This document shows, piece after piece, positions 40,443 through 63,847 of a DNA stretch of 64,000 nucleotides. The stretch spans positions 234,834 to 298,833 of the IMG/VR virus record IMGVR_UViG_3300042350_004528; one strand, written 5' to 3'. The position numbers and the translations under genes were made by a program. The first letter of the stretch is position 1. Every line of letters begins with the position of its first letter. The notes below the pieces were generated by a model that was given only the letters and a program-made list of their open reading frames with translations, had not been told where the DNA came from and searched no databases.

Positions 40443-40524
40443 GGACTAACCTTTACAAACTTTCCGAAGAAAGCTTTTGGGGTTGAACCAAATTTAACCA
40501 GAGTTAGTTGCTGAATTTAGTCCC
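40443..40524 (-). ncRNA. Stem + TTCAGCAA motif small RNA candidate
   Basis: GGACTAA/TTAGTCC closing stem, TTCAGCAA after the 5' arm, starts just after a TAnnTTTG promoter. Confidence 0.55.
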
Positions 40525-40580
40525 AATTGCGATACAAAGATAAGAAATGTTTTTTTAATAAACAAGTATTTTTGAAAATT

Positions 40581-41621
40581 TTATTTATTATATCTGTTGA
40601 ATGAGTTTTGCGATATTTCAATACACTCTGGCTTACCCACAAACTCATTCAAGTTAAGCGCATCGGTATAGCTCATAGCAGATTTAAGATAGTGTGAAAA
40701 ATTTTCAACCCAACCTGGTATTGTATATTCAACTTTTTGTTTTTTGACAATACCCTCGGATGTTTTAATGTCACTCTTACCCCAATCTCTTTGAACCTCT
40801 TTGGTTGACATACCTCTGAATGATTTATACAACGGTATATCGCAATCCAAATAATTTCTGGCTATTTGCGAATATTGATCAATAATTTCACCACTATCAT
40901 TTGTAGTTGTCCCAGAACTTTCCAAAGCCTTATTGAAAATAGAACCCAACATGACGTAATCCGCACCGAGTGCCAATGCTTTGATAACATCCGAATATTT
41001 TTTAAAGCCGCCGTCAGCAACAATTTTGGCTGGTTCCATTAATGTACACGATTCAGAATATACTTCTCGAATCAGGGATGCCATAGGGAAACCGATACCA
41101 GTTTGTACGGTTGTTAAACAACCACCACCGTTACCAATACCAATTCTAACATAGTCAGCGCCAGCAATGGACAAATCAACATATGTTTGTGGGTTAGCAA
41201 CATTTCCAGCCATTATAACTAGTTCGGAGCGGTATTTGTTTTTCGCTTCATTTACAGCATCTATCAAAGCTGGCATGTGCCCATTTGCCACATCAATCAA
41301 AGCATACATTGTTGCACCACGATTATAACTATCGGGTGTGTTTTGTAAAAAAATTTGTTTAAACTCAGTCAATCCATATGACCTCCAACAAACTGGTGAT
41401 GTTGATATATCATCACTATAACTATGTGGTTTCCTAGGTAGGATTACCCTGATATGATTATTAATAAAGAAATCAGCATTTTCATCACTAACCACAGTAT
41501 CCATTGGTGCGGTAAAAATTGGCAACATATCCATATTGTCCAAAATCTCGATTTCGGATCTGGTGTTGATTCTTGTTCTAACCGCAGGTTTAATCAGGAT
41601 GTCATCAAAGTCAATTTTCAT
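40581..41621 (-). CDS. IMP dehydrogenase / GMP reductase family protein
   Basis: FDDILIKP, TAPMDTV, IDVANGH, GNVAN, IGIGNGGGCLT, IVADGG, VMLGS, FRGMST, SAMSY. Confidence 0.9.
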   Translation of the reverse strand: MKIDFDDILIKPAVRTRINTRSEIEILDNMDMLPIFTAPMDTVVSDENADFFINNHIRVILPRKPHSYSDDISTSPVCWRSYGLTEFKQIFLQNTPDSYNRGATMYALIDVANGHMPALIDAVNEAKNKYRSELVIMAGNVANPQTYVDLSIAGADYVRIGIGNGGGCLTTVQTGIGFPMASLIREVYSESCTLMEPAKIVADGGFKKYSDVIKALALGADYVMLGSIFNKALESSGTTTNDSGEIIDQYSQIARNYLDCDIPLYKSFRGMSTKEVQRDWGKSDIKTSEGIVKKQKVEYTIPGWVENFSHYLKSAMSYTDALNLNEFVGKPECIEISQNSFNRYNK

Positions 41622-41648
41622 TCTTTTTCGTGTTTAATAAAAAATAAT

Positions 41649-42257
41649 TTATAAAATATAAAAGTCGTTTACTTCGTGCCTTCTAATTTTACGGTAACCA
41701 AATGAAGTTAAGTATTCTTCAATTTCGGGATCGTTAAAATTGTTTTCAATGCAAAACAATCTGACATTCCATTTTGCGATATCAAAACCCTTTAAAACAT
41801 TTAATTCCGTACCCTCGGTATCAATTGATATAAAATCGATACGATTTATCCAATTAAAATCAGAAATTATATTATCTAAAGTGCGTTCGGGTACTTTAAT
41901 TACATTTATTTGCGGATTATAAATAGCATGAGATAAAATTAATCTTTCATCAATTTCCAACCCACTTATCGCCGTTTGGTTACCACCATCTAGAGTAACT
42001 ACATTAAATTCTACTTCTTTATTATTATGTAACCCAACCGCACAATGAACTGTATTTGCACGATTTTGTTGAAGTAATGGAATCATTTTTGGATTGGCTT
42101 CCACACAAATACATTTCCAACCATTTTGTTCAAAATGATAAGTATTAGACAAATCTATACCATCGGTAGCACCAATGTCTATACAAATACCTTTATATGT
42201 TGGGTCAAAATATTTAGCGATAAAAACATCTTCGCCAAATTGTGAATAAGAGTGCAT
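41649..42257 (-). CDS. FkbM-family methyltransferase
   Basis: YSQFGED, IDIGATDG, VEANP, IDTEGTELNVLKG. Confidence 0.9.
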   Translation of the reverse strand: MHSYSQFGEDVFIAKYFDPTYKGICIDIGATDGIDLSNTYHFEQNGWKCICVEANPKMIPLLQQNRANTVHCAVGLHNNKEVEFNVVTLDGGNQTAISGLEIDERLILSHAIYNPQINVIKVPERTLDNIISDFNWINRIDFISIDTEGTELNVLKGFDIAKWNVRLFCIENNFNDPEIEEYLTSFGYRKIRRHEVNDFYIL

Positions 42258-42324
42258 ATTTTTAGTGATTTTTTTTAATTAAAAATTATAAAACCCCCAA
42301 GCTATTAACCTGGGGGTTTTGAAC

Positions 42325-42675
42325 TTAGATACCGTAACGTTCCATCAATCGGCCAACGGTTCTTGCCGATACACCCAAGGCTTCTCCTGTTCTTGTTTTA
42401 ACATAATCGTTTTGTTTCAAGATACGAGAAAAAGTTTTCTTGTTGATAGACGAGATGTATTGTGCACGATTGTACATATTTGTTGGCACAACACGTTCAA
42501 TAACGACTTCACCCTTTCGGTTTTTGGTTACATTATATTCGTAACCAGAGTTGTTATTGGTAATTGCGTTAACGGTGTTAACGACTTCGTTGCGATTGGC
42601 TCCAGAGAGTTTCATCGACTCACCAGCGACCATCGACTTGATGGCGGCTGACAAGGTTTTGTTGGTGTTAGACAT
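42325..42675 (-). CDS. Small protein with C-terminal Fis-type HTH
   Basis: TRTGEALGVSARTVGRLMERYGI. Confidence 0.6.
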   Translation of the reverse strand: MSNTNKTLSAAIKSMVAGESMKLSGANRNEVVNTVNAITNNNSGYEYNVTKNRKGEVVIERVVPTNMYNRAQYISSINKKTFSRILKQNDYVKTRTGEALGVSARTVGRLMERYGI

Positions 42676-42742
42676 AAATAATGATTTTATAAGACAATAA
42701 TAAGAAAGAAAGTTTGAAATACCAAATATTGGTGAAAAAAAG

Positions 42743-42816
42743 TTGGCGGGATGGGACTTGAACCCATGACCTTGACCTTATAAGAGTCCTGCGCTAACCA
42801 ACTGCGCCACCCGCCA
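42743..42816 (-). tRNA. tRNA-Ile(TAT)
   Basis: GGACT-CTTATAA-GGTCA, A73. Confidence 0.85.
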
Positions 42817-42823
42817 GTCGAAT

Positions 42824-42898
42824 TGGAGCGGTAAGACAGAATCGAACTGTCGTCCTCAGCTTGGAAGGCTGATGTAATAGCCACTATACGACTACCGC
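42824..42898 (-). tRNA. tRNA-Gly(TCC), CCA encoded
   Basis: TCAGC-CTTCCAA-GCTGA, U73. Confidence 0.92.
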
Positions 42899-43175
42899 AA
42901 GATGCCTCATTCTGGGGTTTGATTGAGGTCTAGTTACATCGGTTTCTTTCGCTGTTTCAAGAACCTGCCGCACTTCTGCTGGTAAAACCCGTCAACACTA
43001 CTCGGCGGAGATGTGTCGCTCTCCGTTACTCCGACCCCCAGCATTTTAACTATAAAGGCTCATTACCACCCTATGAGCGGATGATTGCTCTCCAGTACAG
43101 TTTTCGGTTACCATCTGGGTATTAACCGTGATCCTTTAGTGAGATCCAAACACTCTGAGTACCCCTTACTCGTTG

Positions 43176-43248
43176 AGCGGTAGACAGGATTCGAACCTGC
43201 GACCCTCACCTTGGCAAGGTGATGCTCTACCAACTGAGCTACTACCGC
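43176..43248 (-). tRNA. tRNA-Gly(GCC)
   Basis: TCACC-TTGCCAA-GGTGA. Confidence 0.92.
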
Positions 43249-43362
43249 TTAAAAGACAGCCCACAACGTCCACATTATACCGTTGGTGGGGAATGACGAC
43301 CAGTCAAGTTGTGGTTCTTACTTTATGTCGCCTGCAACAGGTGCCACCCACTTCTGTCTTAG

Positions 43363-43452
43363 CACTCGACATGGGAATCGAACCCACCACCCTTAGCGCA
43401 CCACTGTTATGGTGATTCGAACACCGCTACTAAGGGCTGACCCCAATCGAGT
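43363..43452 (-). ncRNA. tRNA-like RNA with two T-loop hairpins and no D arm or anticodon
   Basis: ACTCGAT/GTCGAGT acceptor; GGTG-TTCGAAT-CACC and GTGGG-TTCGATT-CCCAT. Confidence 0.6.
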
Positions 43453-43665
43453 AAGTTGGGGAACCTATTTACAAGCTTTTGGTTCCCCGATTGATCAAGT
43501 TATTTAATTATTTTAACCTCAAATAAGGCATTCACATCGCCAATAAAGGGGATCGGCTTTAAGGTTTAACCGCCATAACTCTCAGATACGCTCGTCATGT
43601 GACTCTTTCTCCGTTTATTTTAAGATGCACGGATCCCTCTCTGATGGGAGTACAAAACATCTGCT

Positions 43666-43743
43666 TGGTTGCGGGAACGGGATTCGAACCCGTGTAATTC
43701 GGCTTATGAGACCGAGCTGGAACCAACTCCAGTCCACCCCGCA
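43666..43743 (-). tRNA. tRNA-Met(CAT), atypical, CCA encoded
   Basis: TCGGT-CTCATAA-GCCGA; fMet-like 5' end, extended D-stem. Confidence 0.85.
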
Positions 43744-44285
43744 GTAATGAAAGGCTCTGAATCGTCCCTGCGCCATTCTCAGGAGAGCCTTTCGGTTTTA
43801 AATAGATTCGGCGATCGATTATTCCCACTGATATACCTAAGATTCGTTAGATCATAGTAACCATCCACAATGGGCCTATACTCTTACACTCCGTCCGTAT
43901 TTACTCACCTAATCAAATGCGTCATAGGTATTTCAGATACAGCGTTCAGTGCTACCCTCAGGACTTCTTCACCCTACCCCCATAGTTACGTGGCAGATCT
44001 CGCTCGGAAGAAAAGAGCGTGTATCGTAGAATTGTCCAGTATTTCTACGACTTGTGGATTACAACACGACCAATTAAGGCCCCTTACCCTCTCAATCCAT
44101 AATGAGGGACTCGGTCATACTCGTTCCCAACGTATCCGACTGAACTTCCCCATGTCGGTAAACCCCGTTTATTAGAGGTTATACGAATTTCACTTCTTGT
44201 GTGACCTTCCCCATAGCCTTGGAGCCTTCTAGCCAGGTTCACACACCATAACGGATGAGTACGTCCGTTAATCGTGGGGTCTTTT

Positions 44286-44377
44286 GCTGATTAAAGGGAA
44301 TTGAACCCAATCCTCCAGCCCTGTCCACTTCTATCCTGAAGCAACTAGGGCCAGTGTGCCCATTACACTATAACCAA
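44286..44377 (-). ncRNA. tRNA-like RNA with a 24-nt insert replacing the anticodon loop
   Basis: TTGGTTA/TAATCAG acceptor, GTGT/ACAC D-stem, GGCCCT/AGGGCT stem, GGG-TTCAATT-CCC T-arm. Confidence 0.6.
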
Positions 44378-44426
44378 TCGAGAGTTTCGAACCTCTCAGA
44401 CTCAAGTTAATTACTCTTGAGTTTTG

Positions 44427-44498
44427 TAGCGGGGGTGGGAATCGAACCCACGACCTCCAGGTTATGAGCCTGGCGAGCTACCTCTGCTCTACCCCGCA
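44427..44498 (-). tRNA. tRNA-fMet(CAT)
   Basis: U1xU72 mismatch, A11-U24, CCAGG-CTCATAA-CCTGG. Confidence 0.88.
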
Positions 44499-44504
44499 AT
44501 GTTG

Positions 44505-44576
44505 TACTCCCTACGGGAATCGAACCCGTCTTTTCAGGATGAAAACCTGATGTCCTAACCGATAGACGAAAGGAGC
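44505..44576 (-). tRNA. tRNA-Glu(TTC)
   Basis: TCAGG-TTTTCAT-CCTGA. Confidence 0.92.
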
Positions 44577-44953
44577 GTAAATTGATGATTCGACCACATT
44601 TCTTACCAGAGCGGAACTAAGGGGTCTATTGGTACCGTACCCTCATGCACTCGATTGGGATTGCAGCCCCGTGAGTCTCCCGATGCGCCAGATTGTCTTT
44701 CCTATACTTTCGCTAACCTATCTGTTATTGGGTTCTGGCAGTGTCCCAGTTAGCATACTCCCATAGTACTTTTTCCTCATCAATTCTTTTTTTTTGCCTT
44801 TACCTTTCAAAGACTAAGTAGGTTTAGTTGCGGACTTTCACGTCTTATGCGTCCATAAGACTCCTTCCTCTGAGTGCTTCTCTTTTTACAGTCTTTAAAC
44901 TATCAAGGTACGTTATCTCAGTTTTCAACACAAAACCACTGTGTTAGCAATCG

Positions 44954-45027
44954 CGATCCCGATAGGATTCGAACCTATGACCTACTGCTTAGAAGGCAGT
45001 TGCTCTATCCAGCTGAGCTACGGGATC
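44954..45027 (-). tRNA. tRNA-Arg(TCT)
   Basis: ACTGC-CTTCTAA-GCAGT. Confidence 0.92.
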
Positions 45028-45036
45028 GTAAATTTC

Positions 45037-45098
45037 GGGTTGATCTTTTTAGTCGGATTTACAAGTCTGATTTTTTAAGATTTGCTGAACTCAACCCC
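45037..45098 (-). ncRNA. Stem + TTCAGCAA motif small RNA candidate
   Basis: GGGTTGA/TCAACCC closing stem, TTCAGCAAA, internal CAGACTTGTAAATCC resembling the Tyr anticodon arm with one extra nt. Confidence 0.55.
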
Positions 45099-45116
45099 AA
45101 TAAGTAAATAAAACAC

Positions 45117-45235
45117 AGGATGCGTTTATACGTGCTCTAACCAACTGAGCTATCGACCTCATACGAAGCCGAGTGGGACTCGAACCCACGACCCCGAGGT
45201 TGACATCCTAAAGTTTAATTTGCGGAATGCATCCT
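45117..45235 (-). ncRNA. Circularly permuted tRNA-like RNA (YrlA/Y-RNA-like)
   Basis: AGGATGC/GCATCCT terminal stem + TTCCGCAAA; T-arm precedes D-arm; acceptor stem closed by a GTAT loop. Confidence 0.75.
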
Positions 45236-45249
45236 CTTTGTTTTATTTG

Positions 45250-45321
45250 CGGTCTATGCGGGAATCGAACCCGCCTCACCGCCGTGACAGGGCGGCATCC
45301 TAGCCGATGAACGAATAGACC
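45250..45321 (-). tRNA. tRNA-Asp(GTC)
   Basis: CCGCC-CTGTCAC-GGCGG, G73. Confidence 0.92.
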
Positions 45322-45327
45322 GTTTAG

Positions 45328-45449
45328 AGCCCAGAGCTGGATTCGAACCAGCGCCTTTTTTTTCCATAAAAAATTGTTAGATAGTGATTTGCTGAAATCA
45401 TCCACACTGGATGACTCTTTTTTTAATGCTACCGCTACACCATCTGGGC
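45328..45449 (-). ncRNA. tRNA-like RNA with anticodon arm replaced by a hairpin + TTCAGCAA module
   Basis: GCCCAGA/TCTGGGC acceptor, D-loop-like segment, TCATCCA-GTG-TGGATGA hairpin + TTTCAGCAAA, GCTGG-TTCGAAT-CCAGC. Confidence 0.7.
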
Positions 45450-45453
45450 TTTG

Positions 45454-45527
45454 CTCCCCCGTCAGGGCTCGAACCTGAGACCTACTGATTAACAGTCAGT
45501 TGCTCTAACCAGCTGAGCTACAGAGGA
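45454..45527 (-). tRNA. tRNA-Asn(GTT)
   Basis: ACTGA-CTGTTAA-TCAGT. Confidence 0.92.
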
Positions 45528-45710
45528 ATATTTGATGGTGTCACAACTATATACCATCAGCTACGGAACCCTTCTGTTAATAAGTAAGTAGGAGATTTAA
45601 AAATCTCGTCCGTATCAAATCCACGCCATTGGTTACGTTGTCTCACGACAAGAGGCTTTACCAAGGCAAAGTTTTAATTTTTTCACCAATATGTCAAAGA
45701 ACAATCTTTG

Positions 45711-45783
45711 AGCCACATGACGGGATCGAACCGCCGACCTACTGATTACAAATCAGTTGCTCTACCAGCTGAGCTAATGTGGC
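45711..45783 (-). tRNA. tRNA-Thr(TGT)
   Basis: ACTGA-TTTGTAA-TCAGT. Confidence 0.92.
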
Positions 45784-45788
45784 ATCTG

Positions 45789-45861
45789 TGGTGCGGGGAG
45801 GAATCGAACCTCCGACACAGGGATTTTCAGTCCCTTGCTCTACCAACTGAGCTACCGCACC
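45789..45861 (-). tRNA. tRNA-Phe(GAA)
   Basis: AGGGA-CTGAAAA-TCCCT. Confidence 0.92.
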
Positions 45862-46001
45862 AAGTAAAGATAATGGTTGGATTCCCGTTACACCCAACTC
45901 TGTACTGCTTCTTGAGTTTTACAAGCGCTTGGCAGAGGGAGCTGATTTCTTCGGCCCAAACTCGCTTGTCGACAGCTTATTTGGAGAAACCCATTATCTT
46001 C

Positions 46002-46100
46002 GTAGCGTATGTGGGATTCGAACCTAAACCAACTATTCATGCTTCGTTGGCCACCTGTACACGGGCTCATGACTGCGCCGTGCTCTCCAAGAGTACGCTA
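46002..46100 (-). ncRNA. tRNA-like RNA (acceptor + T-loop, non-canonical core)
   Basis: TAGCGTA/TACGCTA acceptor, GG-TTCGAAT-CC T-loop, internal TCATG/CATGA stem; no 7-nt anticodon loop found. Confidence 0.5.
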
Positions 46101-46334
46101 TGTATTTTAAAAGTTACAATTCATCGGAATGTGTTTGTTTTCCATTAAAAGTAGAGTTTGTATTATTTGCCGAATACATTCCCGAATTGTGGTACAAAAG
46201 TAAGAACAAAATTTTTAACCTGCAAATACTTTTGAAACTTTTTTCATTTTTTTTCAAAGAACTTATTTTAACGCTTGCTCTCGCAATTGTGGTACAAATG
46301 TAAGAACGAAACTTCAAACTCGCAAACTTTCAAC

Positions 46335-46369
46335 AAAAAAAAACCCGAACTTTTGGTTCGGGCTTTCTA
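46335..46369 (-). terminator. Intrinsic terminator of attenuator D
   Basis: GCCCGAAC-CAAAA-GTTCGGGT + long U tract; TAGAAAGCCCG is perfectly complementary to 46401-46411 in leader D. Confidence 0.88.
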
Positions 46370-46391
46370 CTATGGTTTACACAATGAATAA

Positions 46392-46469
46392 TTACACCAA
46401 TAGAAAGCCCGTAGATGAGTCCTCGCCTCTTCCAAAGAATCTATTCGTTGTATTTATCACTCTTTTCAT
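46392..46469 (-). CDS. Leader peptide D (25 aa) MKRVINTTNRFFGRGEDSSTGFLLV
   Basis: 14 of codons 3-17 are read by tRNAs in the 42743-45861 array. Confidence 0.8.
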   Translation of the reverse strand: MKRVINTTNRFFGRGEDSSTGFLLV

Positions 46470-46604
46470 TGAATGTTTTATAAGTTTTGTATAAATATAG
46501 GTAACTTTATAAAAAAGTCAAGTTTTTGAAAAAAAATATTTTTATCTACGATAAATACTTTATTATTGGTTGATATAACTTATATTTAAGTTATATTTTT
46601 TTTA

Positions 46605-47591
46605 ATGAAAAAAGCTTTAATTACTGGAATTACTGGTCAAGACGGGTCTTACTTGGCAGAATTTTTATTATCTAAAAACTATGAAGTACATGGTACTATA
46701 AAAAGAAACTCAATTAATGAAAATAATTTTGAGCGAATAATTCATATTAAAGATAATATTATACTACACTATGCGGATTTAACTGATTTATCTTCATTAT
46801 TATTAGTTTTACAAAAAGTAAAACCAGATGAGGTTTATAATTTAGCGGCACAATCGGACGTTAGAGTATCTTTTGATCAACCAATTTACACAATCCAAGC
46901 AACTGGTGTTGGGACGATTAATTTGTTAGAAGCTATTAGGCAATTAAACATATCGCCAAAAATTTATCAAGCATCTTCATCAGAAATGTTTGGTAATTCG
47001 ATTGATTCTGATGGGTATCAGAGAGAAACGACACCCATGCATCCCGTTTCACCTTATGGGTGTGCTAAAGTATTATCTTATAATATATGTAGAAATTATA
47101 GAAATGCTTATCATATGCATATATCAAATGGTATTCTTTTTAATCACGAGTCTCCTAGAAGAGGTACTAATTTTGTTACAAATAAAGTATGTAAGGAAGC
47201 CGTCAAGATTTATTTAGGGTTATCTAAAGAATTAAGATTAGGTAATTTAAATGCGACAAGGGATTGGGGCCACGCTAAGGATTATGTTAAAGCTATGTGG
47301 TTAATCTTACAACAAGACAAACCAGATGATTTTGTTTGCTCAACAGGTATATCACATTCGGTTAAAGATTTAGTTGAATATGTTTTTAGTAAATTGGGGT
47401 TAGATTGGACTCAATATGTTAAAGAAGATGCTGAGTTTTTACGAACAGAAGAGTTAAACAATTTAAAAGGTGATTGTACAAAATTAAAAATAAAAACTGA
47501 GTGGGCGCCAACATATTCTTTTGAAAAAATGTTAGATGAAATGATTAATTATTGGTTGGTGAGGTACAACAACGTAATCGATACAAAATAA
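46605..47591 (+). CDS. gmd: GDP-mannose 4,6-dehydratase
   Basis: ITGITGQDGSYLA, YNLAAQSDV, YQASSSEMFG, SPYGCAK, FNHESPRR, RDWGHAKDYV. Confidence 0.96.
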   Translation: MKKALITGITGQDGSYLAEFLLSKNYEVHGTIKRNSINENNFERIIHIKDNIILHYADLTDLSSLLLVLQKVKPDEVYNLAAQSDVRVSFDQPIYTIQATGVGTINLLEAIRQLNISPKIYQASSSEMFGNSIDSDGYQRETTPMHPVSPYGCAKVLSYNICRNYRNAYHMHISNGILFNHESPRRGTNFVTNKVCKEAVKIYLGLSKELRLGNLNATRDWGHAKDYVKAMWLILQQDKPDDFVCSTGISHSVKDLVEYVFSKLGLDWTQYVKEDAEFLRTEELNNLKGDCTKLKIKTEWAPTYSFEKMLDEMINYWLVRYNNVIDTK

Positions 47592-47614
47592 CATTTTTAT
47601 AAAATTTTATACAC

Positions 47615-48415: not shown

Positions 48416-48446
48416 AAATTCAAAGGGTTAGTTAAATAAAATATTT

Positions 48447-48914: not shown

Positions 48915-48927
48915 AAAATATTAACCT

Positions 48928-54238: not shown

Positions 54239-54314
54239 TAAAAATGAATTTACTTATAAATAGTTTAAAAAATCCATTTATACTCTCAAAATTTTTTTTT
54301 ATTATTGTTTCTAT

Positions 54315-54524
54315 ATGAGAATAATAATCAAAGAATTACCAAAGATAAATCACATATATCTATTTGATCAAACAATGCGCCCACTCTTTATGGACATTGT
54401 AAGTAAAAGGAATACAAAATCTTATATAAAAAAAATGATAAAAAAGTACGATATTATTGATTTTGATTTTGTTTCTGCGATAGATTTATCAAATACTACC
54501 GATAGTTTTAGGGGCCATATTTGA
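54315..54524 (+). CDS. Hypothetical protein
   Basis: 69-aa ORF diverging from 54238. Confidence 0.4.
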   Translation: MRIIIKELPKINHIYLFDQTMRPLFMDIVSKRNTKSYIKKMIKKYDIIDFDFVSAIDLSNTTDSFRGHI

Positions 54525-56181
54525 TAATAGAAACAGTACCATTGCTGTTATTTTCCATAATTTGCTTGGTTTCTTGGCTGATTTTTGTGTCATCAATACA
54601 GATTGCGACAATATGAGGTAATTTACTCAATCCAACTGGTATTTTATCCAACTTAAGGTTCATATGAACATCCACGAGAAACAAATCATTACAGTTTGTT
54701 ATATCCTCTTTTATTTCCCTTAAATCGCAACTCGATGCGGTTAATCTAACTAGTTTTTTAAGTTTACCGATGTTAGCGGGTAGTTGTTTGAGTTTTTGGT
54801 TATTATCCAAAACCAACTCAGTCAATTTTTCACATTCACCAAGATCGCCAATTTCTCTGATATCACATCCAGCACAATCAAGATACTCCAAAGATTTTAA
54901 CTCGGAGAACCACTCAGGTACTGAGGTAATTTTCTTGTTGTTTCTAAATTTAATCTTTTTTAGGTTTTTCAAGTCTTTAATCGACTCTGGTAAAAAAGTT
55001 ATACCACAGTCACTTAAATCAAGACTTTTTATACTAGTAATCTCACCTATTTTTTCAAGATATTCCGATTCAATTTTATGACCAGAAAAATCAACGGTTT
55101 CTGGTTTAGATTCCTTGAATATTTTGATGATCTCATCTCCAAAGCCAAGATTCAATAAATATTTAATATCATCAACCTGTTTGTTGTTTTTCTTTTGGCG
55201 ATACGCTAAGACACGCTTAATGATGTAGTTTCTAAAATACAATTTAATATCTTTATTGTTGAAAAGAAATTCATTGATGTTTATACTTTTATCGTTCGCA
55301 TCCATATATTGATTATCCTCAAAATGGAATTGTAGGCGATATTCGGGGTGTTTTGATATGGCTTTTTTGGAACCATACCCTTTCTTAATTAAAACGAATA
55401 ATTCACCTCGGCTATGATAACTATCAAACATATTACCATAACGAGTACCAGCAGTGCACCAGGTTGTGTATTTACCAAACTCAATATTTGCTTGGCGATC
55501 ATGGGTGATTACTATAACCCATTCACTATTTTCAAAAACAAGTTCAGCTTTACCCTCGACTTTCTTATTATCGACAAAATTTTGGATACAGGTTATTTCT
55601 TTATGGTCTAAAGTATGAATCGAATCATCGCCAGTATCGGTACTCATATATGGTTTAACCATATTAACAAATTCATTGATGTCTTTAAATCGATTAATAT
55701 CGCGATTCTCAACAGAAAGTACATTTGTTTTCTTTAAGAATGAAAATACCTCTAGTGCTTCAATAACTTTAGATTGCAAATCCTCAAAAAAGTTTTGGTA
55801 TTCTGGTCTTATCTCAGCGACCGAATTTTCTTTGCTTGCTAGATAAGCATCATCAATTCTATCTCTAATGATATTTTTATACAAGTTAATAAACCAACTA
55901 ACGTATTCTTTATTATGGCTTGGGTCACACTCAACAAAAAAGTTAAATAATAACTCCATTGGGGTTTTACCTTCCAAATATGTACCGTTTCTTTGATATT
56001 GGTTGCGATAAAACTCCATAAATAAATTATCACCGTCATACATTTTAACAGAGTCAACAACAAACTCTTTATCTGGGACTACATGTTTACCATAGATATT
56101 TTTATCAACGGCCTTTTTATGATATTTCTTAAAGATATCAAAAACGTACTCTAATCGTGTTTTCTTGTCCTGTTCAGTCAT
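54508..56181 (-). CDS. Protein with central TTWCTA-type phage domain and C-terminal leucine-rich repeats
   Basis: LDLSDCGITFLPESIKDLKNL, LDCAGCDI, LVLDNNQKLKQLPANIGKLKKL repeats. Confidence 0.8.
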   Translation of the reverse strand: MTEQDKKTRLEYVFDIFKKYHKKAVDKNIYGKHVVPDKEFVVDSVKMYDGDNLFMEFYRNQYQRNGTYLEGKTPMELLFNFFVECDPSHNKEYVSWFINLYKNIIRDRIDDAYLASKENSVAEIRPEYQNFFEDLQSKVIEALEVFSFLKKTNVLSVENRDINRFKDINEFVNMVKPYMSTDTGDDSIHTLDHKEITCIQNFVDNKKVEGKAELVFENSEWVIVITHDRQANIEFGKYTTWCTAGTRYGNMFDSYHSRGELFVLIKKGYGSKKAISKHPEYRLQFHFEDNQYMDANDKSININEFLFNNKDIKLYFRNYIIKRVLAYRQKKNNKQVDDIKYLLNLGFGDEIIKIFKESKPETVDFSGHKIESEYLEKIGEITSIKSLDLSDCGITFLPESIKDLKNLKKIKFRNNKKITSVPEWFSELKSLEYLDCAGCDIREIGDLGECEKLTELVLDNNQKLKQLPANIGKLKKLVRLTASSCDLREIKEDITNCNDLFLVDVHMNLKLDKIPVGLSKLPHIVAICIDDTKISQETKQIMENNSNGTVSIIKYGP

Positions 56182-56260
56182 ATTGTTCTATTTTGGATAC
56201 AAATGTAGGGTAAAAATGTTTAATAAGCAAATTTTCTTTAAAAAAAATGTATTTATCTAT

Positions 56261-56887: not shown

Positions 56888-57762
56888 TATAATAGATTGT
56901 TTATATTTCGTTCGATGTAACATGTATCAAATAACGGATCGACATTATTATCTAATTCAATAAAGTTTTTAGCATTCAGCGCAACATAACCTTGTTTGAC
57001 CATGTTGGTAACTAAATAATCATATCCATCCCAAATTATTTCAACACTCTCCATAGTTTCGAGAGGCAAGAAATAACTATCATTATATTTGGTTTTAATA
57101 TTAGTTGCTATTATTCTTTCAATAGGGCTGAACACCATTAAATATTTATCTAAATTAGTGTTATCATTACTTTTTGCTATTATTTTATATATTATACCAG
57201 CATCATTAACGGTTAAACCAGTTGGTAAAAAAACTAAATGATGATAATCTTCGGATGTATTTAAATCTATAACCACAATGTTCTGCTTTGCCGCTTGAGT
57301 TAGGTCACCAAAAATTACATCATAAGTATTATATGTATCGCCACTAATAACTTCTTGTGTCCAACCACTTGTTATCAATTGATAGCTATGGTTAGATACA
57401 CCTATTGAATATTGCGGGCCATTTAATTCAACATCATTTATATCAATATTAAATGAGCCACCATCCCCCATGCCAATTGTGGCGATTGTACCATTTAGTG
57501 TGTAACCAGTTATTGCCGCACCCTCAGCTAATTTATACCAGTTGCTTAAAGTTGTTGCTGGTAATGTTTTTAACAACCAAACTCCATTTTGATCTGGGTC
57601 TGGATCACTTGTTACAGCAACGGTCATACCCAAATAAGGGTAAGGTAAAGAGTTGTTTGTTAGCTCAGATAATGTTACTACCGTAGCTCTCGCATCTAAC
57701 GGCCCCGCAATTAACGCTTCAAAGTTAGCAGAAAAATTAAAAACACCAGGTACTCTAGCCAT
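56887..57762 (-). CDS. Putative virion structural protein
   Basis: GPLDAR...YLGMTV N-terminal pattern; Thr/Gly/Asn-rich. Confidence 0.5.
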   Translation of the reverse strand: MARVPGVFNFSANFEALIAGPLDARATVVTLSELTNNSLPYPYLGMTVAVTSDPDPDQNGVWLLKTLPATTLSNWYKLAEGAAITGYTLNGTIATIGMGDGGSFNIDINDVELNGPQYSIGVSNHSYQLITSGWTQEVISGDTYNTYDVIFGDLTQAAKQNIVVIDLNTSEDYHHLVFLPTGLTVNDAGIIYKIIAKSNDNTNLDKYLMVFSPIERIIATNIKTKYNDSYFLPLETMESVEIIWDGYDYLVTNMVKQGYVALNAKNFIELDNNVDPLFDTCYIERNINNLL

Positions 57763-57764
57763 AA

Positions 57765-59159
57765 TTAAAATACTAATCTAATTCTTCTAGCACCAGCGGC
57801 TAACCCAGTGTGTGTGTACCTAGTGTAATTAACACTATTACCTTGAATAGTATTTGTTACAGCACTTGTGCTAAATTCACTTATTTTATTTGCCGAATCA
57901 AATTGGTTTGAAACCACGTTAAAATAATTAACCGCAACCAAAGGTCTAGCAGTTGTCCAAGCAACTGGTATCTCAAATTTATGCTTAACAGAATTATCTT
58001 CTGGTTCCGCAACAAAAAGAATCTCAATATTATTACTGTACAACATTGACACTAAAGTTTGTTTTGTCAACGTGTTAATGTTAACTGTTGTTCCAAACAA
58101 AGGATAAACACCCTCAAATAAAGCGTTTGCGTTAACCGTACCAGCATTTGTAAAATTAGTATCGATAAAGTTTGATCCGTCATCATAAACTGGTTGTTGA
58201 CCAACATTATAATCGACAGCAAGTTGCCATTGATTTAGACCTTGAACAACTACATAATTATTTATTGTGGTGCTGTCAGTTAATGAGCTACTAACATTAG
58301 TAATCGTACCAACAATACCTTGACCCGTATAATTGTAATCAATTGGGTTACCCATGTATTTAACTGGTTGGCCTGTCACTGTCGATTGGCCTCTGGTATA
58401 TCCAGCGTTAAGTGTTAAATTATTTGTGTAGCCAATTTCGATTAGAGAAGCGTTAAACGGCGCCCCTTCACTTAAAGATGCTGAGCTATAAAATATCGTT
58501 GGTGCTATTGCTGGATAAAATATTTCTTGTATAATTTCGTGTATCGTCTTACCACCAACAAACGGGCTCGAATTTATCGTTATACCACCGACCGTTTTTT
58601 TAACTGGGTTTGGGTTTTCAAAAGTAAACGCTGGAGCCAAATCGATTACAATCGTGCCACCACCAGCTTGTTCTAAAATTTCTGTAATATTTGTAGTTCC
58701 ACCTGTTGTTGCATTTGTGGTACCACCTGTTATTTCAGTATCGCCACCAGATGCGTTTATGGTTACAATTGTTTTGCCACTGATAGGATCGTCTGTTACT
58801 GTAACATTATCACCAACAAAATTTAATACAGTTCGCTCTACTAATGGTATACCTTCGTCTTCAATTGTAACATAACCGCCAGGTACTCCAGTTCCAATTT
58901 GTCTCCAAACTGTATATGTGGTTGGGCCTTCTGTATAAGATGTGATAAAATTACCAGAACCATACTGATTATACACATATTCAGTATGTGTCATTTCGCA
59001 GTAGTAAATTATACCAACCGCGTCAATTTTTCTCAACACATATTGACCCTCTAAATAACCTTTTTTAGTCCACTCCGCGATATTAAGGTAGACTAAGTTA
59101 CCATCTAATTCGGTGTGACTTAAAGGCCTGGGTAAATTGTTTCTTAAAATTAATGACAT
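57765..59159 (-). CDS. Putative virion structural/fibre protein
   Basis: RPLSHTELDGNL start, T/G/N-rich beta-type composition. Confidence 0.55.
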   Translation of the reverse strand: MSLILRNNLPRPLSHTELDGNLVYLNIAEWTKKGYLEGQYVLRKIDAVGIIYYCEMTHTEYVYNQYGSGNFITSYTEGPTTYTVWRQIGTGVPGGYVTIEDEGIPLVERTVLNFVGDNVTVTDDPISGKTIVTINASGGDTEITGGTTNATTGGTTNITEILEQAGGGTIVIDLAPAFTFENPNPVKKTVGGITINSSPFVGGKTIHEIIQEIFYPAIAPTIFYSSASLSEGAPFNASLIEIGYTNNLTLNAGYTRGQSTVTGQPVKYMGNPIDYNYTGQGIVGTITNVSSSLTDSTTINNYVVVQGLNQWQLAVDYNVGQQPVYDDGSNFIDTNFTNAGTVNANALFEGVYPLFGTTVNINTLTKQTLVSMLYSNNIEILFVAEPEDNSVKHKFEIPVAWTTARPLVAVNYFNVVSNQFDSANKISEFSTSAVTNTIQGNSVNYTRYTHTGLAAGARRIRLVF

Positions 59160-59244
59160 TTATCGTGTATGCTTGGATATTCTTAAATTATTATCTATCC
59201 ATAAATAGTTCGATACACGATAAATGTCACCACAAATTCATATC

Positions 59245-59910
59245 TTATTTTTTCTTTCTTTCAAGAATCGAGTCAATCATACCATATTCTTTAGCTTCTG
59301 GTGATCTCATCCAATAATCCCTCTCAGAATCTTTATATACTTTGTCATAATCCTGGCCAGTATGTTTAGATATGATCTCATAAAGTTCGGTTTTTAACTT
59401 ACCAATTTCCTTTGCTGTGATTTCAATATCAGTGGCTTGACCCTCAGCGCCCCCCAAAGGTTGGTGGATCATTATTCTTGAGTGGGGTAAGGCATATCTT
59501 TTACCCTTTGCCCCAGCACAAAGTAACACAGCGGCCATAGATGCGGCTAAACCCGTACATATTGTTGATATTTCTGGTTTAATATACTGCATTGTATCGT
59601 AAATACCCAAACCAGCATAAACAGAACCACCAGGTGAGTTTACATAGATCTGAATTGGGGCTTCTTTGTCAATTGATTCCAGGTATAATAACTGAGCTTC
59701 TATAATATTGGAAACTCGATCATCAATCGCCGTACCCAAAAATATAACTCTTTCCATCATTAATCTGGAAAACACGTCAATTTGAGCGACATTTAATTCG
59801 CGTTCTTCCATAATGTATGGAGTAACCGAACTCCTGTAATCACTTAATGTGATACTTGAAATACCCATATGCTTCGTTGCATAGTTTTTAAAATCGTTAC
59901 CAATATTCAT
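59245..59910 (-). CDS. clpP: ATP-dependent Clp protease proteolytic subunit
   Basis: DVFSRLM, YVNSPGGSV, GLAASMA, MIHQPLGG, ERDYWM. Confidence 0.96.
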   Translation of the reverse strand: MNIGNDFKNYATKHMGISSITLSDYRSSVTPYIMEERELNVAQIDVFSRLMMERVIFLGTAIDDRVSNIIEAQLLYLESIDKEAPIQIYVNSPGGSVYAGLGIYDTMQYIKPEISTICTGLAASMAAVLLCAGAKGKRYALPHSRIMIHQPLGGAEGQATDIEITAKEIGKLKTELYEIISKHTGQDYDKVYKDSERDYWMRSPEAKEYGMIDSILERKKK

Positions 59911-59937
59911 ATTTGTTTTTTTATAAATTTAATTAAT

Positions 59938-61614
59938 TTAGTTTAAATAATCAACCCACATTTTATGATTTACACCCATTTTTTCACAAAAAGATTCAAA
60001 AGTTTTTTTCGAATAAACAAATCTAAAATTAACACTAGAGGCTAAGTTATTATTGTTATTCTGAAAAGCTTGTGTGAAATTACTATGTGTGTATTTCATT
60101 TTGAGATTATTATCGTTAGTTATTCTAACCCTTTCGTATGCTGACATAGTGATTGGATTAAAGTATATTGTTGATATTACGTTTTTGTTTTTAACAATGT
60201 TAAAAGATAATTTAATACTATCAAAATTAAAAACGCCGTGTCTAATAAAATTAAAATCTTCTTCTGGTATTTTATTAATGTTTCTTAAAGAATAATTAAC
60301 ACTTATCTTTTCGTCTTTTTTAAAATATCTACCAAACCTTTTTAGTGTTTTATCATCAATTTTATAAGTACCAATGGCTACCGCTTCGAATAAACAATTT
60401 GCAATTTTTTTAAGTATTACTTCACAGTTTTTATAAGTCCATGTTGTGAGAAGAGTATTCTCATGATTGTTTATTTTTATTTTTATACCAAAAAATTCAA
60501 ATATTTTAAGCACCTTAAATATGTGGCCATCACCAGAATCTTTAAAACGTGAAATATCATAATAGTTTAGATTGTACATTTTAGAGTATTTTTCCATTAA
60601 ATCATACTCAGCGATTTCATTATTACTTGTAAAAAGTGTTGGTTTAAACACATTTTGATTTAACTTACCGCCATTAAATTCATAAGCTAGTCTTAATTCG
60701 GTATAATCAATCCCATTTAACGCATGTGCATAACTTGTGGGATAACCAGCGCCATTTGGTTTTAAAAGGAATTCGTTTTCCTGGTTAACAATCAAACGCT
60801 TATACTTAAAAAGCAAACTGAAAAGTAATTCTTTGTCTTTGATTTTATAATAATCACTCATGTAATCGACTATACCCAGTCCACGATATTTAGCTTTGTT
60901 TCTATTAAAAATATGTTGAAAATAGTATATAAAATTATATGAGATAATATCTATACTGTTTACCTTAAGATAATTTAAAAATGGGAACAACTCTAAAGCG
61001 GATGTATTTGGTGGGGTATATATAGGTTCCTCATCAAAAAAAGTTTTAACAATTGCTTTATAATCATTTGTTAGATTATGATAACCCAATTTACCATAAA
61101 ACAACCTTATTGCCGTGTCCATATTCAAGTTATTTCTACTATCACTGATCATGCAATTTAGTATTCGAGATGTCTCCATATTTGAGACATTTTTACGAAT
61201 AAAGGTAGAATACCTTTTACCCATTTTTGATTTCCTATAAACACTGTAATCACCAGTTGTTTTATTAATTGTTAAGATCCTGGATGTTTTGGTTGTGATT
61301 TTAAATCTTTTGTATTTCAACTTTTTAACTGGCACCAATGTTTTGGCGAAAAGATATTGTTTTAACGATATCGTGTTGTTGGTTAAATTTTCTGAAACAA
61401 CAAAAGTTTCCCGATAAACGGTAACCTCACCATTGTTAGCCATTTCTTTTTTAAACTCATCCGAATCGACCTCAATGTGTTTTTGTCGCTCAAACGTGTG
61501 CTCAGATCCCCCCTCATCTTCCGAAAAAATTGCCTGAATGGTTGATACCACTGTTTCGGTTACTGATTTTGTAAGCTTCTCATCAACAAATTTGTAATGA
61601 ATGATTTCTTCCAT
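59938..61614 (-). CDS. Hypothetical protein
   Basis: 558-aa ORF. Confidence 0.6.
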   Translation of the reverse strand: MEEIIHYKFVDEKLTKSVTETVVSTIQAIFSEDEGGSEHTFERQKHIEVDSDEFKKEMANNGEVTVYRETFVVSENLTNNTISLKQYLFAKTLVPVKKLKYKRFKITTKTSRILTINKTTGDYSVYRKSKMGKRYSTFIRKNVSNMETSRILNCMISDSRNNLNMDTAIRLFYGKLGYHNLTNDYKAIVKTFFDEEPIYTPPNTSALELFPFLNYLKVNSIDIISYNFIYYFQHIFNRNKAKYRGLGIVDYMSDYYKIKDKELLFSLLFKYKRLIVNQENEFLLKPNGAGYPTSYAHALNGIDYTELRLAYEFNGGKLNQNVFKPTLFTSNNEIAEYDLMEKYSKMYNLNYYDISRFKDSGDGHIFKVLKIFEFFGIKIKINNHENTLLTTWTYKNCEVILKKIANCLFEAVAIGTYKIDDKTLKRFGRYFKKDEKISVNYSLRNINKIPEEDFNFIRHGVFNFDSIKLSFNIVKNKNVISTIYFNPITMSAYERVRITNDNNLKMKYTHSNFTQAFQNNNNNLASSVNFRFVYSKKTFESFCEKMGVNHKMWVDYLN

Positions 61615-61686
61615 ACTTTGATTTATTTCAGCAAATATAAGGAAGAATTTTTAATAAACAAAAAAAAATGGGGGAAATTTCCCCCA

Positions 61687-62070
61687 TTATTTAATCTCGA
61701 CAGTCACACTTTTTGTTTCTTCTTTTTTTCTCAATGGTACTTTGATTTTAAGTAACCCATTTTCCATTTTAGCTTCAGTTTTACTCAGATCGTGTGAGCT
61801 TGATAAGTAGTAACTGTATGAATTATCAACATAGCGCTTAACAAAACCTTCAGCGTTTTTAATATTAGTTTTAACAATTAATGTCCTACCAGAAACCTCA
61901 ATTGATAAATGTTCTTTATCCAATCCTGGTAAAGGTAATTCCGTTAAAAACTCCTTGTCGCTTGGAATGTCATAAGATGTTCTAAAATCCTCATTGAAGA
62001 TGTTAAATAATTCATCAAAGCTTTGCCATAAATTCTTTTGGCTTCTCATGTTTGTTCTTAGTGTGTTCAT
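61687..62070 (-). CDS. Small heat-shock protein (Hsp20)
   Basis: LPGLDKEHLSIEV, AKMENGLLKIKVP. Confidence 0.85.
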   Translation of the reverse strand: MNTLRTNMRSQKNLWQSFDELFNIFNEDFRTSYDIPSDKEFLTELPLPGLDKEHLSIEVSGRTLIVKTNIKNAEGFVKRYVDNSYSYYLSSSHDLSKTEAKMENGLLKIKVPLRKKEETKSVTVEIK

Positions 62071-62171
62071 ATTTTTTTATTTTTAAATTTTTATTATACT
62101 GAAAATAAATTTACCAATTAAATGCCAAATTAATTTAAAAGACATTTTGTCTTAATTTGGTTAATTTAAAT

Positions 62172-62200
62172 AAAAAAGGACTGACAAAATGCCAGTCCTT
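62172..62200 (-). terminator. Intrinsic terminator closing the TROVE-like transcript
   Basis: AAGGACTGGC-ATTTT-GTCAGTCCTT + U tract. Confidence 0.8.
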
Positions 62201-62206
62201 AATTTC

Positions 62207-62266
62207 TGAGTGGGGGTCTATTGTATTTGGCTTTTCAATTTAAATAACAATTGCTGTAACCACTCA
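62207..62266 (-). ncRNA. Stem + TACAGCAA motif small RNA candidate
   Basis: TGAGTGG/CCACTCA closing stem, TTACAGCAA after the 5' arm. Confidence 0.6.
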
Positions 62267-62276
62267 CATTAAATTC

Positions 62277-62440
62277 GAGGTACTATCGGAATCGTTTGAA
62301 TCTTAAAGTGATCCGTCCTAGCTGGGTAAAACTTCCTTAGCTAAGGGAAGAGTTGGTTATGGCATCCGAAGATCCATAAACCTTTCTGTATAGCATAATT
62401 AATATTTAGTTAATTTTGCTGCAATTATTCCCAATACCTC
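62277..62440 (-). ncRNA. Stem + TGCAGCAA motif RNA candidate
   Basis: GAGGTA..GGAAT / ATTCC..TACCTC terminal helix with internal hairpins; starts a few nt after the stop of the TROVE-like gene. Confidence 0.6.
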
Positions 62441-62446
62441 AATATT

Positions 62447-63847
62447 TTAAGCTGTAATAGGCTCGTAACGTGCACTATGTACAGTTTTATTCATGATGCT
62501 GATTGGTGACATATCCTCACCAGTCAACAATGATTTTAAAATTGCTGGAGAAAACCCACTCACCAATGCAGTACCGTTGTCGGTAGTCTGAACTGGGTAG
62601 TTTCCACCATTTCTGCTTTGAATGTTCCAGAATACCAATTTTGGCATTGTGTAACCAGCGGACTCGTATTGTTCACGAATCATATCCAAAGCGCTGTTTT
62701 TATAACGAGTTGCTGAATTGAACTCCATATCTGACATAATCAGAATAGTTGTTGGCATCTCAGACTCTGGTAAGCTGAATTTTTTAGCTTGATTCAAGAT
62801 CAAATTAAAAACCGCTTCCAAATTTGTACTCATACCCCAGTCAGCTCTCGCCAATTGCATGTGGCGATCACTTAAGTTACCGTTAAGGTATTGCAATTGT
62901 GGGTTTTCACTAAAAGTTATGAAAGCGTCTTTAAACTTACCTTCATTTCTTTCTGAAATGTAAAGACCCAAAGAGATACAAACATCCATACATGTAACGT
63001 TAGCGTTACCACCAGCTGGTGAACTCATTGATCCAGATACATCGCATACTGGTAAAACTCGCTCATTGTTACCTTCCATGTAATTAGGGAGTGAAGCCCA
63101 TTGCTTCATAGCCATGGTTTTGTCCCCTCTAACTAATGTTTTCAACACATCATATGGATATACCGCAGATGCGTTTACCTTAGTATCGCCAGTTTTGTAG
63201 GCTGTAAAACGTTCAGCATCGTGTTTACCAAATGCTTTAGTATAACGAGCCATAGCAACAGATGGTACGTGTTCATATGTAACAACACCCCATTGATTTG
63301 AGCACATAAGTTGTTCAACCACCTTGGTTTTTTCAACCAACATCTTACGATATTGTTTAGGTGATAGCTTCATATAACGCTCCAATGCGATTGCTTCTTT
63401 ACCTTTACGAGGCATCCATTTAGCGCAAAGACCATTATTTTCGTTAAGAGCATTAACGATAAGGTTTTTTGCCTGGGTATCCAATGAGGTGCCAAATAAC
63501 ACTAAAAGATCGTCCCAACGTCCATATTCTGGAACGTATGATAGGTTTTTAGCCAAAGCCTCGTTATGGTTTTCAACCAAATAAAGCATTAAATCCTTGA
63601 AAATTTGACGCTCACCCGCACCACCACGAACGTCACGAGCCCAGAACATAGTTCTAAGAGCGGTTAATGGACTTTCGTTGAAAGCTTTTGAAAAGTTAGC
63701 GATTAATCTTCCCTTATCTTGACCACGCATCGCACCGATGGTGAAAAATAAATCAACACAAGCGTTCAATGATGAACTGTTAGTAACCATTCCGTTTTCG
63801 GTTACATTGTCTCTTGTTCTAAGAGCATTTACTAATGAGTTTGCCAT
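62447..63847 (-). CDS. DUF2828-type TROVE/Ro60-like protein with C-terminal vWA domain
   Basis: FWARDVRGGAGER, YGRWDDLL, AKWMPR; MIDAS DVSGS, SDMEFN, VFWNI, VSGFSP. Confidence 0.8.
   Translation of the reverse strand: MANSLVNALRTRDNVTENGMVTNSSSLNACVDLFFTIGAMRGQDKGRLIANFSKAFNESPLTALRTMFWARDVRGGAGERQIFKDLMLYLVENHNEALAKNLSYVPEYGRWDDLLVLFGTSLDTQAKNLIVNALNENNGLCAKWMPRKGKEAIALERYMKLSPKQYRKMLVEKTKVVEQLMCSNQWGVVTYEHVPSVAMARYTKAFGKHDAERFTAYKTGDTKVNASAVYPYDVLKTLVRGDKTMAMKQWASLPNYMEGNNERVLPVCDVSGSMSSPAGGNANVTCMDVCISLGLYISERNEGKFKDAFITFSENPQLQYLNGNLSDRHMQLARADWGMSTNLEAVFNLILNQAKKFSLPESEMPTTILIMSDMEFNSATRYKNSALDMIREQYESAGYTMPKLVFWNIQSRNGGNYPVQTTDNGTALVSGFSPAILKSLLTGEDMSPISIMNKTVHSARYEPITA

Follow-up and report, generated by a model that had tools for sequence, protein, structure and literature searches.

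The 64,000-nucleotide stretch of viral DNA analysed here (the window; positions 234,834 to 298,833 of IMG/VR record IMGVR_UViG_3300042350_004528) probably encodes a phage ribonucleoprotein of the Ro60/Y-RNA kind, made up of a divergent Ro60-like protein with the domains DUF2828 and DUF7788 and of its own class of Y-like RNAs. Conservation of Ro60/Y-RNA particles extends from bacteria to humans, and the role of the Y RNAs is still poorly understood. The window, which has a G+C content of ~33%, comes from a jumbo phage and belongs to a viral contig of 298.8 kb, and 80 related viral loci with protein homologues at 58–100% identity were fetched alongside it. Phage Ro60/Y-RNA systems with a canonical TROVE protein are known already; what appears to be new here are the putative RNA partners of the DUF2828 gene, the helix-CAGCAA module that these RNAs share, and the permuted tRNA mimics found among them.

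A DUF2828/DUF7788 protein and RNAs with a helix-CAGCAA module

The gene lies at 62447–63847 on the minus strand, and its 466-amino-acid product joins N-terminal helical repeats (DUF2828, Pfam E-value 3e-35) to a C-terminal vWA domain (DUF7788, 2e-51). The family is large, with 6,694 cluster representatives at E ≤ 0.001, and its PHROG 850 assignment is ‘RNA-binding protein’. An AlphaFold2 model with 64 diverse homologues as input reached a predicted local distance difference test score of 93.6 and a predicted template modelling (TM) score of 0.92. When this model was compared with the PDB using Foldseek, the nine best matches were exclusively Ro60/TROVE structures, aligned over the full length (~500 columns) with E-values from 1.6e-8 to 5.6e-6 and TM-scores of 0.53–0.63, and from rank 10 onward only isolated vWA domains were found. 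The sources of these nine are Xenopus Ro60, human Ro60, a TROVE-domain crystal structure and the Ro60 of Thermus phage phiLo, and the entries include 9kop, 2i91, 9l5y (phiLo Ro60), 9nep and 1yvp. A PDB search with the single protein sequence gave nothing meaningful; with the family profile, Ro60 and TROVE chains ranked first, weakly (E 0.017–0.034), and the alignment fell at the metal ion-dependent adhesion site (MIDAS). This site (DxSxS...T...D) is complete in the vWA domain, with D269, S271, S273, T341 and D373 invariant in the 64 homologues and aligned onto the MIDAS site of Ro60 in the profile search, and in the helical part many Arg and Lys residues are invariant in the same homologues. 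The protein is thus predicted by the model to have a Ro60 fold, a ring of HEAT-like helical repeats closed by a vWA domain, and because the Foldseek matches run full-length but Pfam TROVE is absent, this would be a Ro60 fold without TROVE membership by sequence. The preliminary description of this DNA had called the protein TROVE-like, which holds for its fold but not as a Pfam TROVE sequence match. Close structural relatives also appear in giant viruses of eukaryotes (Pithovirus, Marseillevirus, Cafeteria roenbergensis virus and Bodo saltans virus) in a Foldseek search of BFVD.

The module common to the RNAs consists of a covarying helix of 6–9 bp, 1–5 nt, a single-stranded C-N-GCAA that hardly varies (in most cases CAGCAA), and a G that follows the 3' strand. 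Helix sequences differ by clade (GGGAAU/AUUCC, GGAUCG/CGAUCC, GGAUAG/CUAUCC, GAAUGA/UCAUUC, UGGUUCC/GGAACCA, AGGUGUA/UACACUU), and the bodies attached to the module include minimal A-rich hairpins, a four-way junction, a T-arm, a YrlA-like tRNA mimic and a circularly permuted mimic with tRNA ends. From 23 short RNAs we built a covariance model, R1. In these RNAs the closing helix is paired in 98.8% of cells, a share partly built in by the helix filter with which the instances were chosen, and shows compensatory changes in six of seven pairs; its covariation score is 0.915 vs. 0.205 when shuffled and ≤0.21 in slid controls. No family of Rfam 15 covers the CAGCAA RNAs, and at curated thresholds Rfam finds only tRNAs and transfer-messenger RNA (tmRNA) in the window and 20 related loci.

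Six RNAs sharing a stem followed by CAGCAA had been proposed for the window, and all six are present on the minus strand where they had been placed, but the count is at least seven, with 46116–46190 added. As had also been proposed, two of them stand between the stop codon of the DUF2828 gene (62447) and an intrinsic terminator hairpin with a U-run (62171–62200, minus strand), which ends a transcription unit comprising the gene, RNA6 and RNA5; matching terminators follow the RNAs in the related loci L004–L008. RNA6 (62277–62440, minus strand) starts 7 nt past the stop codon and reads GGGAAU-AAUUGCAGCAA...AUUCC-GA-UAGUACCUC, a two-part terminal stem with a GA bulge around a multi-hairpin body. 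Its fold of -45.3 kcal/mol (z -3.7) was equalled in stability by none of 200 shuffles, and its orthologues in L004, L005, L006 and L008 keep the bulged two-part stem with wholly different lower-helix sequences. RNA5 (62206–62267, minus strand) is a short RNA, UGAGUGG-UUA-CAGCAA...CCACUCA-G, in which the strand UGAGUGG runs into UUACAGCAA and the partner CCACUCA is followed by G; as a member of the training set it scores 35.8 bits with R1, and it has orthologues in L002 and L004.

The remaining short or multi-hairpin RNAs lie farther from the gene. RNA1 combines the helix GGGACUAA/UUAGUCC and AUUCAGCAA with a lower stem GCAAUU/UAGUUGC, for which its interval was widened to 40427–40530 (minus strand). 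It has a two-part terminal stem, a GA bulge and a 3' U-run, and its body holds a T-arm-like hairpin, UUUGG-UUCAACC-CCAAA (40476–40492), and then a UUCG hairpin; the fold has a z-score of -2.1, and the RNA, which is outside the training set, scores 21.1 bits with R1 (E 0.005, the E-values of R1 being rough because they come from a shortened calibration). RNA7 (46116–46190, minus strand), likewise outside the training set, scores 33.5 bits (E 2e-6) and reads ACAAUUC-GGGAAUG-UAUU-CGGCAA...CAUUCC-GAU-GAAUUGU, a two-part stem with a bulge as in RNA1 and RNA6. The folds of these three show a two-part end stem with a 2-nt GA bulge, in keeping with the general plan of Y RNAs, a long bulge-interrupted stem of the two ends with a variable loop region. 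RNA2 (45028–45098, minus strand), a short RNA immediately 5' of tRNA-Arg, is GGGGUUGA-GUUCAGCAA...UCAACCC, with the module reading GGGGUUGA-GUU-CAGCAA...UCAACCC-GAAAU, and scores 45.7 bits with R1 as a training-set member. Run over the window with filters off, R1 has its six best matches exclusively in non-coding gaps, on the minus strand in every case, and the octamer TNCAGCAA is found 16 times in the window vs. 7.7 +/- 2.7 expected. Rfam scans by E-value of the RNA5/RNA6 and RNA1 regions returned noise only.

A second octamer, UCCGAUAG, has two exact copies in the window (40438–40445 and 62283–62290), which are the 3' strands of RNA1 and RNA6, and it was dropped as a defining feature, being neither enriched at one mismatch nor general across the family. 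Comparable strings are UCCGAUG in RNA7 and CCCGAAAU in RNA2, and this type of strand resembles the canonical GGUCCGA/CGAA Ro-binding motif, but on the opposite strand of the stem.

The two RNAs in which tRNA elbow modules had been noticed, RNA3 and RNA4, do contain them, and they represent two arrangements of the same parts. RNA3 (45116–45235, minus strand) is a YrlA-like tRNA mimic that matches Rfam YrlA with 45.9 bits (local E 3e-9), short of the curated cut-off of 69, and it runs from the closing helix GAGGAUGC/GCAUCCUG through AUUCCGCAA, a T arm and a closed acceptor hairpin to a D arm. Its hexamer is CCGCAA, not CAGCAA. For 29 aligned YrlA-like CAGCAA RNAs, RNA3 among them, the consensus (RNAalifold) opens with the closing helix and CAGCAA, proceeds through a V-arm and the T arm to the closed acceptor hairpin and the D arm, and returns over an A-rich linker to the closing helix; 21 of its 23 pairs show compensatory changes. 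For the 3' strand of RNA3, Rfam pairs a second GGAUG (45204–45208), which we rejected, given that 28 relatives favour the first copy, preceding AUUCCGCAA; the second copy may reflect another conformation or be left over from a canonical YrlA stem.

RNA4 (45328–45449, minus strand) matches Rfam tRNA with 39.6 bits, combines D and T arms with an open acceptor stem, and carries a 55-nt insert at the place of the anticodon arm, which is replaced by a capped helix, UCAUCC/GGAUGA, with UUUCAGCAA and a V-arm. ARAGORN does not call it; instead of an anticodon arm with a 7-nt loop it has a 6-bp hairpin with a short loop. Its parts follow the circular order of RNA3, but the opening is at the acceptor stem and the CAGCAA helix is closed, and RNA4 is thus a circular permutation of the RNA3 type. 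The permuted form recurs in ~20 other loci, including Citrobacter phage Ci1, and its short loop joins what in the unpermuted form are the 3'-terminal ...CCUG and the 5'-terminal (U)AGG.... In the consensus fold of 25 permuted RNAs the acceptor stem is joined by the D arm, the capped helix and the T arm, and 20 of 22 pairs vary in a compensatory way; the acceptor stems had been filtered for pairing, whereas the capped helix had not. Since the module persists under circular permutation, there is good reason to regard it as a self-contained functional unit. An intron-containing tRNA was considered for RNA4 and rejected, as no anticodon stem-loop lies on either side of the insert and the architecture recurs with covariation.

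Linkage of the module to the gene in metagenomes and cultured phages

The enrichment of the motif near DUF2828 genes that the preliminary description anticipated is borne out in several ways. Among distinct DUF2828 loci with at least 300 nt of sequence downstream of the gene, 55 of 55 carry the module on the gene strand within 600 nt downstream, and CAGCAA occurs there 94 times on the gene strand and twice on the opposite strand, with 8 expected. Searching 82 loci with R1 (E ≤ 0.1) placed all 82 matches on the gene strand beside the gene and none opposite. We also scanned IMG/VR blind to the protein, for CAGCAA followed 25–50 nt on by a T-loop (117 loci, in which the invariance of CAGCAA is by construction), with a scrambled ACACGA plus T-loop as the control (118 loci). 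A DUF2828 homologue was present in the retrieved flanks, which is where rather than in whole contigs presence was judged, for 21 of 117 motif loci and 0 of 118 control loci (Fisher p 1.6e-7). Restricted to loci with at least three tRNAs, the comparison is 13 of 48 vs. 0 of 37, and therefore the linkage is not a mere by-product of tRNA arrays; ordinary tRNAs make up ~6 of the 133 protein-blind motif matches. R1 found 52 further short RNAs in 853 kb of motif loci against two in 911 kb of control, and thus the RNA classes cluster together. Both control matches lie in one 10-kb contig (L259, 5755–5826 and 6682–6749) in which no DUF2828 gene was seen and which may have one beyond its end. Another locus (L010, 6360–6482) has a match to the tRNA model with a ~50-nt insert in the anticodon region and without CAGCAA, and so other kinds of insert-bearing tRNA-like RNAs occur in these arrays.

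The pairing of protein and RNAs recurs in hundreds of phages. By tblastn the protein was found in 710 of 50,697 phage records, among them Felix O1-like phages, phages of Listeria, Staphylococcus, Enterococcus and Campylobacter, KVP40-like vibriophages, and cluster L mycobacteriophages, in which the gene is annotated as ‘Ro-like RNA binding protein’. At protein identities of 33–43%, the module lies beside the gene on the same strand, upstream or downstream, in Felix O1, LMTA-57, EFDG1, F355 and LeBron. The tRNA array just downstream of the Felix O1 gene holds three short motif RNAs and one YrlA-like CAGCAA RNA, a locus kept in 260 records, and mycobacteriophage LeBron has three motif RNAs downstream of the gene, one of them YrlA-like. 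Upstream of the gene, two motif RNAs are found in Campylobacter F355 and three in Enterococcus EFDG1, where two are YrlA-like, one of these with CAGCGA. Rfam YrlA scored the EFDG1 and LeBron RNAs at 34.2, 39.8 and 44.9 bits, all below 69. In Listeria LMTA-57 three motif RNAs lie between the promoter and the DUF2828 gene, and a gene for the ‘tRNA-splicing ligase’ RtcB (L319, 5802–7013) follows 1.3 kb downstream of the latter. The neighbouring genes differ in every lineage examined, and DUF2828 is the sole gene found consistently with the RNAs. No motif RNA adjoins the DUF2828 gene of Aeromonas phage Aeh1, for which the surroundings of the gene were what was scanned.

Two further elements were seen beside these RNAs. 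In EFDG1 (L322, 2340–2780) a conserved hairpin of ~45 nt (...AGUUCC...GGAAC-AUAAAGAA) precedes each of the three motif RNAs and may be a processing signal. In LMTA-57 a gene-free stretch of 1 kb contains a match to ROOL RNA (L319, 1422–1973; 88.5 bits vs. a cut-off of 99.1, E 1e-16), placed between a tRNA and the CAGCAA RNAs with the DUF2828 gene.

Known Ro systems and competing explanations

Ro60 proteins characteristically bind Y RNA on the outside of the ring and the 3' ends of RNAs in its central hole. Rsr/YrlA systems have been described from 254 bacteria and 22 phages (PMC4201824). The window resembles Rsr with YrlA/YrlB (PMC4201824; RF02553) in its ring-plus-vWA protein, as modelled, adjoined by several small RNAs on the same strand, and resembles YrlA in the sequence of T arm, closed acceptor-like hairpin and D arm within a presumed protein-binding stem formed by the ends. 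On the other hand, its protein is DUF2828/DUF7788 and not Pfam TROVE, and its RNAs are without GNCGAAN0-1G, in place of which a helix with CAGCAA marks the junction to the variable-arm region. RNA3 has GAGGAUGC-AUUCCGCAA as its 5' strand, and in the family consensus CAGCAA occupies the place of GNCGAAN0-1G in YrlA. The stem is also short here (7–9 bp), and minimal hairpins and the permuted form with tRNA ends are extra classes. Comparison with the Rfam YrlA model, which had been suggested as a check, gave consistent matches, though all of them sub-threshold (34–46 bits vs. 69). YrlA is expected within ~4 kb of its gene on the same strand. The strand is always the same here; RNA5 and RNA6 adjoin the gene and RNA3 is ~17 kb off, and in Felix O1, LeBron and EFDG1 a YrlA-like RNA lies within ~1 kb of the gene.

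The Ro60 of phage phiLo, which binds Yrl1, Yrl2 and the host PNPase (PMC12135203), is likewise a phage protein of Ro60 fold with neighbouring Y-like RNAs, and by structure (9l5y, 9kop) it is one of the top four matches to the window protein. It differs in being a recognisable TROVE protein whose RNAs have CGAA in a stem-bulge-stem, with neither a tRNA-like domain nor CAGCAA, and binding was shown there by experiment, whereas the present system is known from sequence and models. A closer relative is probably gp130 of phage Bas63, which a preprint reports to have a Ro60-like structure, to be encoded upstream of tRNA genes and to counter the ppl defence system, its authors guessing that some of the ‘tRNAs’ are Y RNAs (10.1101/2024.10.10.617714). 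Like the DUF2828 gene of Felix O1, its gene is directly upstream of a tRNA array, and by this synteny gp130 would belong to the same protein family. Chen et al. reported that, seen from the RNA ends, the T- and D-like arms of Yrn1 come in another order than those of YrlA (PMC4201824), and permuted topologies among Y RNAs therefore have precedent; the difference from Deinococcus radiodurans Yrn1 is that here both permutations occur in one family, often in one phage, with the same module. The Ro-likeness of the DUF2828/DUF7788 family is thus already recorded, in annotations and one preprint, and it is possible that Burroughs and Aravind 2016 or the 2020 bacterial Ro60 review had placed DUF2828 in the Ro/TROVE superfamily. 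In the searchable literature, whose coverage does not extend to two relevant reviews, the CAGCAA RNA partners, the module and the permuted mimics are not described.

In the arrangement that we favour, a Ro60-like ring with Y-like RNAs, the helix with CAGCAA would be the docking site of the ring, and the variable body of each RNA would decide what the particle is tethered to or what it mimics; the preliminary description had likewise put the binding site of the protein at CAGCAA and taken the RNAs for tethers or decoys. Such docking and tethering would follow the precedent of Rsr/Y RNA/PNPase (PMC4201824) and of phiLo Ro60/Yrl/PNPase (PMC12135203). Likely partners would be tRNA-recognising enzymes or nucleases, given the location of the RNAs within tRNA arrays and, for Listeria phages, close to the RtcB ligase. 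Transcripts of the gene or of the tRNA arrays may include the RNAs, which would then be excised as stable RNAs, and the permuted form with tRNA ends might be freed by the ordinary tRNA-processing enzymes.

Several points weigh against a Ro60/Y-RNA particle. Pfam TROVE (PF05731) has no match to the 466-amino-acid protein, even at E ≤ 10, and the TM-scores to Ro60 are moderate. Judged by its sequence, the module is unlike the motif that Ro canonically binds (GNCGAAN0-1G, or GGUCCGA on the 5' strand) and would therefore have to be recognised in another way. Of the seven RNAs in the window, five are 16–22 kb from the gene, and the filtering of the short-RNA helices and permuted acceptor stems, the constructed hexamer of the protein-blind set and the rough R1 E-values, all given above, count on the same side, as does the fact that we infer RNA binding by the DUF2828 protein, and the expression and processing of the RNAs, from computational analysis.

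The CAGCAA RNAs could belong to the DUF2828 pathway and yet be bound by another phage or host factor, such as a tRNA-modifying enzyme, a tRNA-repair enzyme or a nuclease, with the ring acting on other RNAs, e.g., damaged tRNA ends. That the module differs from every known Ro-binding motif (PMC4201824) would fit such an arrangement, as would the position of the RNAs in tRNA arrays, the RtcB gene 1.3 kb from the DUF2828 gene in LMTA-57, and the binding of misfolded RNA ends by Ro60 rings independently of Y RNA (PDB titles). However, the neighbours that might encode another factor change by lineage while DUF2828 does not, and the hexamer is kept at 33–43% protein identity in phages of E. coli, Listeria, Mycobacterium and Campylobacter, hosts with very different RNase repertoires and tRNA-enzyme sets, which argues that the reader of the motif is encoded by the phage. 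We therefore consider binding by another factor unlikely.

Less likely still is a cis-acting role without any free RNAs, in which the elements would be untranslated-region structures for autoregulation or stabilisation of the DUF2828 mRNA, or would signal processing or termination in the tRNA operons. RNA6 and RNA5 do lie inside the transcription unit of the gene ahead of its terminator, RNA1 ends in a U-run, and in Listeria, Campylobacter and Enterococcus phages the elements stand in the 5' leader. A purely cis role is nevertheless improbable because the module occurs on either side of the gene depending on the phage, in 2–4 copies with different bodies, also 16–22 kb away inside tRNA arrays, and joined to whole tRNA-like domains in two permutations, one of them with the ends of a native tRNA. 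Functionless decay, whether of tRNA genes or of mobile-element remnants in the arrays, would agree with the labels ‘tRNA-OTHER’ or pseudo-tRNA that some genome records give these elements and with the homing endonuclease genes that populate the arrays, but extensive compensatory covariation, a hexamer invariant at 33% protein identity, an absolute strand bias and the linkage to one gene make it very hard to believe.

Beyond the proposal of a Ro60/Y-RNA particle, we tentatively raise a broader one, to which we give less than even weight: DUF2828/DUF7788 proteins might be a second major branch of Ro60 particles with a helix-plus-CAGCAA code, and would then rank with the most widespread ribonucleoproteins of large phages (710 of 50,697 records, with relatives in giant viruses). 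Their modular RNAs, the tRNA mimics in both permutations included, would serve in counter-defence, tethering the particle or acting as decoys where host systems sense or cut tRNAs and other RNAs. The apparent branch is large, without described RNA partners, and present in well-studied phages (Felix O1 relatives, A511/P100-like Listeria phages, cluster L and Campylobacter phages). The module is a crisp and mutable RNA signature with natural modular variants (minimal hairpin, tRNA mimic and permuted tRNA mimic), and what a Y RNA tethers Ro to thus becomes testable by phage genetics. If true, this would give a role to a very common phage gene of unknown function, including its reported anti-defence phenotype, and would account for many of the ‘pseudo-tRNA’ calls in phage genomes.

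Genomic surroundings in the window

Three clusters with a total of 27 tRNA genes lie in the window, as does one tmRNA, all on the minus strand; the phage tmRNA (38774–39152, minus strand; Rfam 78.8 bits) lies beside the tRNA clusters. The cultured-phage search at the DNA level found no close relative of the window phage. On the 3' side of the Ro-like gene, and all on the minus strand, are genes for an Hsp20 chaperone (61687–62070), directly after the terminator, a ClpP protease (59245–59910) and a leucine-rich-repeat protein (54508–56181). Between RNA7 and tRNA-Phe lies a tRNA-shaped element (45995–46100, minus strand) with a 7-bp acceptor-like stem and a GGUUCGAAUCC T-loop, which is without CAGCAA and is recognised by neither ARAGORN nor Rfam. 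A 23-nt direct repeat, GTTCTTACNTTTGTACCACAATT, has exactly two copies in the window (46185–46207 and 46285–46307, minus strand), one of which overlaps the 5' end of RNA7, and could be a local duplication or a phage promoter.

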